From Podarcis bocagei (Eukaryota): a DNA stretch of 64,000 bases. The notes under the pieces are model-generated. The model searched no databases and was not told the DNA's origin. It saw nothing but the letters and a program-made list of their open reading frames with translations. Numbering within the stretch: position 1 is the first letter of the stretch; each line of letters opens with the position of its first letter. The DNA lies in assembly GCA_964188305.1 (NCBI GenBank), contig OZ076894.1; one strand, 5' to 3'. The translations under genes and the position numbers were made by a program. Below, one piece after another: positions 5,257 to 60,080 of the stretch.

Positions 5257-7562
5257 TGAATGAAAGGTCAGGCCAGATCCGGTACAAAAGTAGATTATGC
5301 TAACTTCCCCCCTCCCACCTCATTGACACTAGTGTTACGGCGCATTGGAACAAGAAGGCAATCTGAACAAGTAAATCTGAACAAGTATTTATATATTTGT
5401 TCAAAAGCAAAACACCTCTCTGCATCAAAGGCAATCATTCCGTAATTCTTTTAAGCTAATTGTTCTGCCAGCCTCCTTTGTGTAAGTCTAAACCTTCATT
5501 TACTCCTTTTTTAAAAAAAAAACTGAGAAACAGGTTATTCTTACCATAATAGATTGGCTTGGTTGCAAACTGAACAAAACAACGTTTTTCTGCTTTAGAG
5601 GTTTATAGCCAAGCCCCCTATGCACTGGACTGGAATTGCAATCTGGGGGTGAATAGTGTAGAATTTTGGGTCTAGGTAAATATCACTTGGTCCGCTCCCA
5701 AAACAAGAATATCCCTTGTGTTTAAATTCTGTTTTGCTGGAAGAAGTGGAAATGGGGGCTTATTCGTTTTTATTAATGCACAAAAATCTAAAAATCTCTG
5801 TTTCAGTTCATTGCCTATTGCATCATCTGTTGGCTGCCTTATAATAAAAACTAAACATGAAAATATAGTCTGCTGTCAAAGCACTGCACCAATCAGTAAA
5901 ACAGCAACATAATTTAATAGAGAAGCTCTCCATGAACCTGTTCTTCAACACCCCTGCAAGAGCATCCATTCCATGTCGTCCTCTTCTCCACCCCCTTCTA
6001 CATTTGTTGCTTCTGCTAATACATTCATACTGTAATAGAGGTGAAAGGGGAGTTTAATTATATAATCTTGACAATGGCAATAGGATTAAGAAGTAATCCT
6101 TGCTAATAAAGTAGTGTGGGTTACGAATGAAGTTGAAATTGTCAGGGGTTTTCAGCGGGACCTGAGCTGCCCTGGCTTCTGCAGCTGTCTGCTTGCCCTG
6201 TAATTGAATGTCTGAAAGTGATTGAAAAAATGTTATTTCTTCCCTGGATTACATGCTAATGTACAGAGGGCAAAGGGAGACAGCAAAAGAACACATAGCT
6301 GCTTATTTCATCCATTTGTGGGAATGAGCTTTGGGAAATCATGGAGGTAGTGCAGCTCTCGGATGCCCATCTGCAAACACAATGTATTTGTACGCTGGGA
6401 ATAGAGGGCAAAGCTGCTCTGATCTCAGCAGAGCATCTCCTCTATTGTGCTACTGGCACACATTGAGATTGATGCAAGATTAAAGACCATCACACCTCCT
6501 AACAATTGACAGAAATGACAATTCATCTGAATTTTTTTGGCAGTTATTCACCCATTGATTACCTAAGCGTGTGCACCTCATTTATACACACTTTATTAAT
6601 GCAAAAGGGAATGTGTCACACATGCAGTTTACAGTATTTTTAAACAAAGGCCTACAGCTGACAAATATGCCCTTCTGTGGTCTCTGTGTTCCCTGCTTTT
6701 TAATGAGTTGGATGACAAATATAACCCACTTTTCTGCTTTATATAATGGCCTGCATATTGTTAGATCTGTACCCAGCCTATTGTTTTGAGTAGTACACTG
6801 ATCTGCCTCTGTGATAAACCCTGTGGAGATGTGATTATTCCAATAAAAATTCATTCAGTTGGAAACCAACGCTCCAGCTGTTTATTCCCACAGTCCCTAA
6901 GCTGCACTAACACTGTGTGTGGATTCCTTGAAAAATATTTAAAAGGCAAGCTGAAACCACTTCTCAAATGCTATATGTCTCAGTCTCTAGCTATGGGCAG
7001 CATTTAACTTCTGAACAATAGATCCCTGCCATGCATGAAAATAAAAACCCATGTACAGAACTCATAAGCAACTTTCTAAATAAGCTAATCATCAGGAAAT
7101 CTGGGTCAAATTGGTTTGCCACTCCCCCCCAAATCTACACACACATATGTGAAACTAATATTTCCCATCCAACCTTCCTTTTTATGCAATTTGCATTATT
7201 GTTTAGAACATGAGGTATTCGGTTCTGAAATATTTCTAAATTTCTGGAAGAAGGAAGCTCGATGATATAATAGCCACCTAGATGGCATACATAATTGTTT
7301 GCATTGTTTGCAGCTGTAGTTGTTCAAATGTCTGGCAGTCCCAAGTGCAGCAAATGCATTGCATGTGTACTTGCGGGGGACTGGGGACTTATAAGAATTT
7401 AATTTCTAAATCCAGTCCTTTTTGTGGAGGGTGTCATTGGATTAAAGCGAGCTAATAAAAAGAAGAACATACACTTATATCTGTGCAACATTTTGTGCTT
7501 GTTGCGGAGACCACTGTTAACAAGTTTTTGGACTGTGGTTTTTGTTTCTTTCCCTTTGGTAG

Positions 7563-58638: not shown

Positions 58639-58741
58639 TTGCTGTCATGTTCAACTTTCCAGATCCTGCTACAGTAAAGAAAGTGGTTAATTGTCTACCT
58701 CGTGTTGGGATTGGTACTAGTTTTGGATTGCCCCAAACTAG
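58639..58741 (+). CDS. LRBA: LRBA coding exon (end of PH domain)
   Basis: Acceptor ctttttatccacAG| and donor AG|GTATGA. 103 nt, phase 1/2. Encodes (V)AVMFNFPDPATVKKVVNCLPRVGIGTSFGLPQT(R). Confidence 0.96.
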
Positions 58742-59403
58742 GTATGAAGAATCCTCTAGCTCTAGGAAACAAAGCAAACAAGCATGATCTGAAACACAGG
58801 AAGGAAGTGGAAACAAGAAAAAGAGAGCAGTTTCCACTGCCTTGTTTCAGTAACACTGTCCTTTTCTTTGCTATCTTCAGATTGCCCTATGCAGGCACAA
58901 TTGTCTTATGCTTACTGTCTACTAGGAAAATGAAATAATACTTAGAAGTTTGGATGATGCAGATATTAGCAGATAACATGATAATTGTAAGATGTGGAAA
59001 ACTGGAATAGAATGAATAGTTGTCGGATAAAATCAGTGGTCTATGATCACAAAATGAAGGCTGAATTGGAAGGCATACATGTTGTTCTCAGTGCTGTATG
59101 TGATATGAGAATGAGGCAAAATACTGGTAGAAGGGAAAAGGCACACTCTGATTGTGATGGGCAGAAATTGTGCCAGATCCAGAATTAAAAGAAAGTGGCT
59201 GCTTTATAGTGAAGTGGCTGCTTTTCTGAAATGATCCCATGTATTAAAAGGGAATCACATGGAAAATTAACTACTAAGTTAAGGAGTGTGGCTTCTTTAG
59301 GCCTCCAAGATTTGAAAATTGTATTTAAATTCTGCAGCACTTGAAATTTGTGACAAATTAAAAGTGGATGTGAGGAGCTAGCAAGCAGTTTTGTCATTGT
59401 GGT

Positions 59404-59828
59404 ATGGTGTTGTAGTTGATTGCCCACCTGCAGGTGATGACTGGAGAATGCACTGGAGTGAAAGGCAAGGAGGCACCCGAGACCAGATGTTTTGCCTTGA
59501 AGCTGGGCTGGGATGCCTTGAGCCTGATCTTTCACTTTAACTCTCAGTTTGAGATTTGTGAAGATACTAGGACCATTGTGTGTAACTCTAAGGCATCTGA
59601 AGAGTGCGGTGAGAAACATCAAAAGTTGGAGTTCCCCTTCCAGCAGGGAGAAGAGACCAAGATATGTGTCTCATTTGAGGTCAAGGAGGTTGATAGCAAA
59701 GCTGTATAATGGGCTGGAACTTAAGTTCCCAATTTGGCTAGGGCTAGAAGAGCGCTTATAGTACCTCTTTGTTGCTGGTGATCTTGATGTTACAGTTTTA
59801 ATGTTAAAAAACTGTCAAGTTTAAATGA
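59404..59828 (+). pseudogene. Galectin-1-like processed pseudogene (prototype galectin, resembling avian CG-16/LGALS1 type)
   Basis: Translates as MVL*LIAHLQVMTGECTGVKGKEAPETRCFALKLGWDALSLIFHFNSQFEICEDTRTIVCNSKASEECGEKHQKLEFPFQQGEETKICVSFEVKE, then after a +1 frameshift (~59689) LIAKLYNGLELKFPIWLGLEERL*YLFVAGD, ending KTVKFK*. Colinear with galectin-1 motifs GEC, HFNPRF, TIVCNSK, FPFQ, FPNRL and GDF. No introns. Confidence 0.88.
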
Positions 59829-59888
59829 TGCTCTTTGGCCTCATCAGTCTTGTATCAAGAAGGATAACTTCTTAAAAGGAGAAGATGA

Positions 59889-60080
<192 letters not shown>

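Follow-up and report, generated by a model that had tools for sequence, protein, structure and literature searches.

A probable processed pseudogene of a squamate galectin in an intron of LRBA in Podarcis bocagei

Introduction

How does a galectin come to lie inside an intron of LRBA, and what has become of it there? The question is raised by a short segment of the 64,000-nucleotide stretch of Podarcis bocagei DNA that is analyzed here (GenBank assembly GCA_964188305.1, contig OZ076894.1; hereinafter the window, with coordinates given on its plus strand unless another contig is named). A reading made from the letters of the window alone, hereinafter the sequence-only reading, had described this segment as a hidden, galectin-1-like retrocopy. 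The presence of a galectin remnant in the LRBA intron is confirmed by the present analysis. The explanation that we favor, with a probability of roughly 0.9, is that of a processed pseudogene: a spliced galectin mRNA would have been inserted into the LRBA intron by an L1-type mechanism and would have decayed neutrally ever since, with no demonstrated function.

Results

The host intron and the galectin remnant

The gene that harbors the segment is identified as LRBA by the exon at 59945-60060, in which 36 of 38 residues are identical to those of the human LRBA PH-BEACH structure 1t77 (E 2.7e-20), the corresponding neurobeachin structure, 1mi1, being a weaker match (E 2.7e-17). The galectin copy and LRBA are on the same strand, and 116 nt separate the end of the coding remnant from this exon. 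The placement given in the sequence-only reading, namely, in sense orientation within an LRBA intron of about 1.2 kb and 116 bp away from the next exon, is thus upheld in every respect (Table 1).

Read over three frames, the segment is a complete prototype galectin that extends from the ATG at 59404 to the stop codon at 59826-59828. The 97-aa piece encoded by 59416-59706 matches the Pfam family PF00337 (Gal-bind_lectin) with an E value of 4.5e-10; the top match among solved structures is chicken CG-16 (PDB 1qmj, E 8.4e-23); and the nearest proteins are squamate lectins annotated as '16 kDa lectin / galectin-1-like', with 55-57% identity (55-56% for those of Anolis and Pogona). On these scores, the similarity to galectins is well above chance. 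Both the full-length frame ending in KTVKFK that had been proposed previously and the match to the galectin-1 family that had been suggested as a check of it are clearly seen.

Frame 1 runs from the ATG to ...SFEVKEV with a single interruption, the TAG at codon 4. Past position ~59692, frame 2 reads IAKLYNGLELKFPIWLGLEERL, a stop, and then YLFVAGDLDV, where the C-terminal end of the relatives reads ...GDLD(I/V)KS(I/V)KF(D/K) followed by the stop codon. The window copy contains no intact open reading frame of ~134 aa: there are two in-frame stops, a +1 frameshift, and insertions of 3 and 16 nt. Most of these lesions had been noticed before. Both stops are present where they had been reported, each of them a TAG; the frameshift, previously put at ~59689, agrees within a few bases with the position in Table 1; and the small insertion described near 59785-59810 corresponds to the 16-nt one. 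The inserted CGC codon is a lesion absent from the earlier description.

The sugar-binding residues have fared no better. H44, N46 and N61 are retained in the codon alignment, and the remaining four of the seven are lost: R48Q (CGA>CAG), W68C (TGG>TGC), E71K (GAA>AAA) and R73Q (CGA>CAA), exactly the pattern of retention and replacement that the sequence-only reading had listed. R48Q and R73Q fit CpG decay, as had been stated there, and together with the change of R111 to W, they make three Arg codons lost through CpG-type transitions. As translated, the window copy is no functional galectin.

Table 1. Features of the LRBA intron, its flanking exons and the galectin-derived insert (window coordinates)
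Feature	Position	Strand	Evidence
Upstream LRBA exon, encoding ...AVMFNFPDPATVKKVVNCLPRVGIGTSFGLPQT and the AG of a split Arg codon	58639-58741	+	Translation; splice signals CACAG/ and /GTATGA
LRBA host intron, 1203 nt, GT...AG	58742-59944	+	Flanking exons match the LRBA PH-BEACH structure 1t77
5' copy of the candidate target-site duplication, AAAAGTGGATGTG, with TT before it	59360-59372	+	11-nt exact repeat
Presumed 5'UTR-derived sequence, 31 nt	59373-59403	+	Location between the 5' duplication copy and the ATG
Galectin coding-sequence remnant, without introns	59404-59828	+	Translation, Pfam and PDB matches, codon alignment
Premature stop TAG, codon 4	59413-59415	+	CAA or AAA in relatives (codon alignment)
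+1 frameshift, one extra base	59692 (placed to ~3 nt)	+	Frame 1 ...KEV passes into frame 2 IAKLYNGLELKFP; Anolis has EEVIVKLPEGQELKFP
Extra codon CGC (59753-59755) and premature stop TAG (59759-59761)	59753-59761	+	Codon alignment
16-nt insertion, breaking the frame ahead of the final six codons (KTVKFK) and stop	59792-59807	+	Translation, codon alignment
3'UTR-derived sequence, with a decayed poly(A)-signal block at ~59872-59890	59829-59900	+	Aligns to the Pogona 3'UTR
3' copy of the candidate target-site duplication, ATAAGTGGATGTG	59901-59913	+	12 of 13 positions match; 11-nt core exact
Last 31 nt of the original intron, with pyrimidine tract and AG acceptor, intact	59914-59944	+	Read from the sequence; branch point presumed
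LRBA exon opening the BEACH domain	59945-60060	+	1t77, E 2.7e-20; Pfam PF02138

Absence of introns

Was the copy made from a gene or from its mRNA? Exact exon models were mapped for the galectin genes of five relatives (Anolis, Pogona, Phrynocephalus, Candoia and Elgaria). All five consist of four coding exons, with introns of 0.8-5.1 kb located after aa 3 (phase 0), 28 (phase 2) and 84-86 (phase 0), and the intron positions of the lacertid lectin P0010 are identical to these three. The window copy is unbroken at each of the corresponding sites (59412/59413, 59489/59490 and 59661/59662) and contains no residual intron sequence; it aligns without gaps to aa 1-96 in one frame and then onward to the stop. 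At the last of the three sites, contigs of a functional paralogue (from runs X13 and X6) match 59624-59661 and diverge into an intron starting with GTGAGC exactly at 59661, whereas the window continues directly into exon-4 sequence.

Because it is continuous across all three intron positions of its relatives, we conclude that the window copy is a retrocopy. The processed pseudogene proposed in the sequence-only reading is supported on each of the points that bear on it, that is, the strong galectin match, the introns of the relatives and the lack of co-duplicated flanks. That reading had itself raised two objections. One was that the parent gene might be intronless, which contrasts with the three introns found in every one of the mapped relatives and missing from the window copy; the other was that flanking genomic sequence might have been duplicated along with the gene, whereas the similarity to the relatives ends at the 3' end of the mRNA.

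A contig of 141 nt from organism E (X13 record 3), which matches the window at 59628-59663, has the end of exon 3 (...FPFQQGEETK) fused to the start of exon 4 (ICMSF, a frameshift, then DDKEV) without an intron. This contig may stem from another intron-less galectin copy, distinct from that of the window and located at another place in the genome of organism E, or from cDNA in a run of uncertain type.

Boundaries of the insert

In a repeat search, an 11-nt sequence, AAGTGGATGTG, was detected as an exact direct repeat, with copies at 59362-59372 and 59903-59913. The 5' copy is preceded by TT, which yields a TT/AAAA site, the motif of the L1 endonuclease. Among 20,000 control pairs of segments with equal geometry drawn from the window, 0.8% share a word of at least 11 nt, so that the chance of encountering such a flanking repeat is ~0.008. 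The repeat is a candidate target-site duplication, which could have arisen by chance with a probability of ~1%.

The 5' boundary of the insert is set by this repeat alone because the 5'UTRs are too divergent for alignment: the similarity between 59373-59403 and the Pogona 5'UTR is weak, and the 5'UTRs of the five functional genes cannot be aligned even with one another. At the opposite end, the 3'UTR of the window copy aligns to a block, (A)ATAAA/TAAAAT-GAGAAC-GAT, that is conserved in the five functional genes. The similarity stops after this poly(A)-signal block, and the genomic sequence downstream of the functional genes has no counterpart in the window. No poly(A) tail survives, with at most 1-2 A between ~59899 and the 3' repeat copy; given that the copy is old, the loss of the tail is to be expected. 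The purine-rich stretch 59874-59890 was considered as a decayed tail and rejected, the alignment identifying it as the parental poly(A)-signal block. Tandem repeats were looked for at the copy, and none was found.

Delimited in this manner, the insert spans 59373 to ~59900 and consists of a presumed 5'UTR of 31 nt, the full coding sequence and ~70 nt of 3'UTR, altogether ~530 nt, a size that fits a galectin-1-type mRNA. It ends 42 nt before the acceptor of the LRBA intron, the insertion point being located ~32-45 nt upstream of that acceptor. The picture drawn in the sequence-only reading has to be modified here. The insert had been estimated to take up about a third of the intron, and with the UTRs included, this fraction becomes ~44%. 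Neither a poly(A) tail nor a target-site duplication had been recognized; the former is indeed missing, but a candidate for the latter has now been found, complete with the TT/AAAA site. The copy had also been described as ending close to the branch-point region, and it does end close to the acceptor, but the final 31 nt of the original intron are located downstream of the insert and are not interrupted by it.

The parent lineage

To which of the squamate galectins did the parent belong? A profile search yielded 234 relatives, the best 120 of which were examined, and a maximum-likelihood tree was constructed from 44 rows, with the pseudogene entered as a read-through containing an X at each break. 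In this tree, the pseudogene belongs to a clade (97/94) together with genes from snakes, one from an anguimorph and the iguanian 134-aa paralogue, and a quick tree built earlier agrees with this placement. A clade that would unite the pseudogene with the annotated lacertid lectins P0005, P0006 and P0010, from Zootoca and Podarcis, is rejected (AU p 0.002), and these annotated lectins are thereby ruled out as the parent. The position of the pseudogene as the sister to the toxicoferan genes, which is the expectation from the species tree, is acceptable (p 0.33). In the 44-row tree and the AU tests, the pseudogene shows no significant grouping with any lacertid gene.

The affinity with the 134-aa paralogue (Anolis P0002, Pogona P0014, Phrynocephalus P0013 and the snake genes) is apparent in the proteins as well, which have the same length and 55-57% identity and share both the start, M-A/V-L and then Q-L-V/I-A-H, and the end, KS/T-I/V-KF-D/K followed by the stop. 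The genes of this paralogue are intact, with four coding exons and the H-N-R...N...W-E-R residues kept; the window copy, by contrast, is intron-less, is disrupted by two stops and three indels, and no longer has R, W, E and R. The likeness to avian CG-16 that had been pointed out in the sequence-only reading holds at the level of motifs, GEC and FPFQQG being shared with the chicken protein (galectin-1A; 1qmj), which is also the best structure match. The closest kin, however, are found in the squamate paralogue clade, and the orthologues of CG-16 (among them Lacerta agilis P0120 and Anolis P0111) belong to a clade separate from that of the pseudogene.

Has the parent lineage left any other descendants in lacertids? 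Podarcis raffonei possesses a further tandem galectin gene, unannotated by all appearances, upstream of P0010 (L003:1-5865). Adding this gene to the clade of the pseudogene costs 0.13 lnL (AU p 0.44), and for a sister relationship with the pseudogene, the test gives neither support nor rejection (p 0.105). Given these placements, the parent lineage may survive as the tandem gene, which, because it contains introns, is a possible descendant of the parent; with the best 120 of the 234 relatives examined, it is the only lacertid gene found that possibly belongs to this paralogue lineage. Compared with the pseudogene, it shows 69% DNA identity in exon 3 and differs by a deletion of four codons and a C-terminal extension.

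Exons of the tandem gene are located at L003:3806-3964 and 5689-5832, the second being also delimited as 5689-5865. The deletion affects the core (NPRFE----TRD), the extension goes beyond the usual stop to give a product of 141 aa, and H-N-R...N...W-E-R is retained. The galectin clusters of P. raffonei and Pogona adjoin PRY/SPRY (TRIM-like) genes, not LRBA, and within the window, there is no second galectin match. One member of the 134-aa clade, Elgaria P0088 (L006), evolves fast, with as much change at the first two codon positions as at the third; both E71 and R73 are replaced by Q in this gene, which is nevertheless intact and consists of four exons. Elgaria P0088 may be a non-lectin galectin.

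Decay, age and distribution

At sites that are invariant in the five functional genes, the pseudogene shows differences in 12.7% of first, 16.5% of second and 25% of third codon positions. In four of these genes, the figure for first and second positions is 1-9%; the fifth, that of Elgaria, evolves fast. Three-taxon estimates for the pseudogene branch give a dN of ~0.21 and an omega of ~0.4-0.7, compared with ~0.12-0.2 for most of the functional branches; the dS of this branch, 0.3-0.8, is saturated and noisy. C>T or G>A account for 35 of the 71 changes, and the differences between close species are about as dense inside the copy as in the rest of the intron. The substitution pattern of the copy, accordingly read at the level of codons and nucleotides, appears close to neutral.

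By a two-phase argument, of the time that has passed since the copy and the toxicoferan genes diverged, roughly 30-65% would have been free of constraint. This corresponds to an age on the order of 50-150 million years, and a rough figure of tens of millions to ~100 million years is retained here; it is given as an order of magnitude only because dS is saturated and noisy. The estimate uses 130 codons, with split times and neutral rates taken from general knowledge.

How widely is the copy distributed? A contig of organism D that covers 58725-59917 is 98.6% identical to the window, with no indel and no change at any of the lesions, and the Logan contig L001 shows ~99% identity to the window copy, with a 16-nt indel at 59916. 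The galectin stretch is present in sequencing runs under five organism labels. The copy is fixed in several closely related species and, because the lesions are shared, was already dead in their common ancestor. In two bulk RNA-seq runs of organism E (X23 and X24), no reads at all map to 58725-59960, an interval that includes the exons as margins of ~17 nt; this result is uninformative on expression and exonisation.

Contig L001, which comes from a related species, carries its 16 extra nt at 59916/59917, that is, 28 nt upstream of the LRBA acceptor, and therefore the presumed branch-point neighborhood tolerates indels. A contig of organism E (X13 record 1) tracks the window up to 59101 and turns into unrelated sequence, CAGTGTTCTCCAACCTTGGGCCTCCAGCTG..., from 59102 onward. 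This break within the LRBA intron could reflect a species-specific repeat insertion or an assembly break at a repeat.

Discussion

Origin of the copy and competing explanations

The scenario that we consider the most plausible starts with a spliced, polyadenylated mRNA of a prototype galectin of the galectin-1/CG-16 family that would have been reverse-transcribed in the germ line. The parent gene would have belonged to the clade of the squamate paralogue that is represented by the 134-aa '16 kDa lectin' of Anolis, P0002, and by Pogona P0014. An L1-type LINE would most likely have inserted the copy at the TT/AAAA site by target-primed reverse transcription, sense to LRBA and within the 1.2-kb intron just ahead of the first exon of the BEACH domain. 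Since the insertion point precedes the acceptor by ~32-45 nt, the 31 nt at the end of the original intron were left in place, and with their pyrimidine tract and AG intact, LRBA splicing probably tolerated the insert, which would have been neutral for the host gene. The copy would have arrived without a promoter of its own and would have decayed neutrally afterwards.

Could the copy have been generated differently? A duplication at the DNA level, segmental or through capture by a transposon, with the introns lost later, would be in line with the absence of a poly(A) tail, and MAFFT did set the LRBA pyrimidine tract against a T-rich region downstream of the Pogona gene. This match, however, is of low complexity and belongs to the LRBA acceptor, a conserved element that must be older than the insertion; moreover, all three introns are gone precisely, with no residue, and the similarity ends at the 3' end of the mRNA, so that such an origin appears extremely unlikely, more so than any other alternative considered here. 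The choice of the machinery is less clear-cut. Squamate genomes harbor many LINE clades, and with the tail gone, a retrocopy made by a non-L1 LINE or by the reverse transcriptase of an LTR element can be envisaged. Nevertheless, the duplication of ~13 nt at a TT/AAAA site combined with a full-length mRNA copy is the classic signature of L1, and across non-mammalian chordates, retrocopy counts track the L1 content (PMC3136929); we regard a non-L1 origin as improbable. Does the remnant, whatever its origin, serve a function now, whether within LRBA as an exonised cassette or poison exon, in regulation or as an expressed non-coding RNA? The sense orientation 42 nt from the acceptor, the acceptor- and donor-like strings, such as ...CCCACCTGCAG/GTGATG at 59433/59434, and the long retention with few large deletions might be taken to suggest so. 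Against this, the copy has no Rfam match, its antisense ORF of 145 aa matches no Pfam family, the substitutions are near neutral, and the close-species differences are as dense as in the rest of the intron. A present function is accordingly given very little credence.

The remaining alternative concerns the parent rather than the copy. An intriguing possibility is that the parent paralogue went extinct in lacertids, leaving an orphan retropseudogene as the fossil of a lost gene. The clade of the pseudogene otherwise consists of iguanian, anguimorph and snake genes only, grouping with the annotated lacertid lectins is rejected, and no lacertid member of the clade is found among the best 120 of the 234 relatives. 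This extent of the match list is itself a reason for caution, and the tandem gene of P. raffonei, at a cost of 0.13 lnL, may join the clade. The loss of the parent is possible but is not sustainable on this evidence, and we deem it unlikely, even if the least so of the alternatives discussed here. A bolder version, under which the copy is an orphan fossil and the sole lacertid trace of the paralogue, was inserted ~100 million years ago and maybe gave the LRBA intron splice-relevant sequence, is more doubtful still, about on a par with the non-L1 origin or slightly ahead of it. If this were true, the copy would be a rare genomic change that marks the Lacertidae as a whole (or the Lacertoidea) and might have supplied LRBA with branch-point surroundings or a cryptic poison exon.

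Comparison with known retrocopies and implications

The processed pseudogene that we favor has much in common with the L1-type processed pseudogenes of vertebrates: it is an intron-less copy of an mRNA from the presumed 5'UTR to the 3'UTR, flanked by a repeat at TT/AAAA, its locus is probably unrelated to that of its parent, and it combines frame-breaking lesions with near-neutral substitution. Unlike typical members of this class, it has a wholly eroded poly(A) tail, and the distance of 42 nt that separates it, in sense orientation, from the acceptor of a conserved exon in a large essential gene is unusually short. The window copy is a textbook processed pseudogene, in which the defining features are present except for the poly(A) tail. 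New with respect to the sequence-only reading are the candidate duplication with its L1-type site, the 3'UTR, the size of the insert, the identity of the paralogue and the age.

Taken alone, one such copy matters little: a few hundred retropseudogenes are expected per genome in this lineage, and in Anolis carolinensis, ~404 retrocopies have been catalogued, 187 of them retropseudogenes (PMC3136929). The copy nonetheless has modest uses, as a cleanly bounded presence/absence marker for lacertid phylogeny and as a neutral, 'frozen' record of a galectin paralogue in its ancestral state, which helps untangle the duplications of galectin-1 in squamates. It also indicates that a 0.5-kb sense insertion at a distance of 42 nt from the acceptor of an essential gene can be tolerated.

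For annotators, the locus holds a caution. In a public assembly, the longest open piece of the pseudogene is reported by an ORF caller as a 91-aa 'galectin' with a GTG start (P0001; Logan contig L001:72-347). This 'galectin' is an artefact of annotation and could lead homology searches astray.
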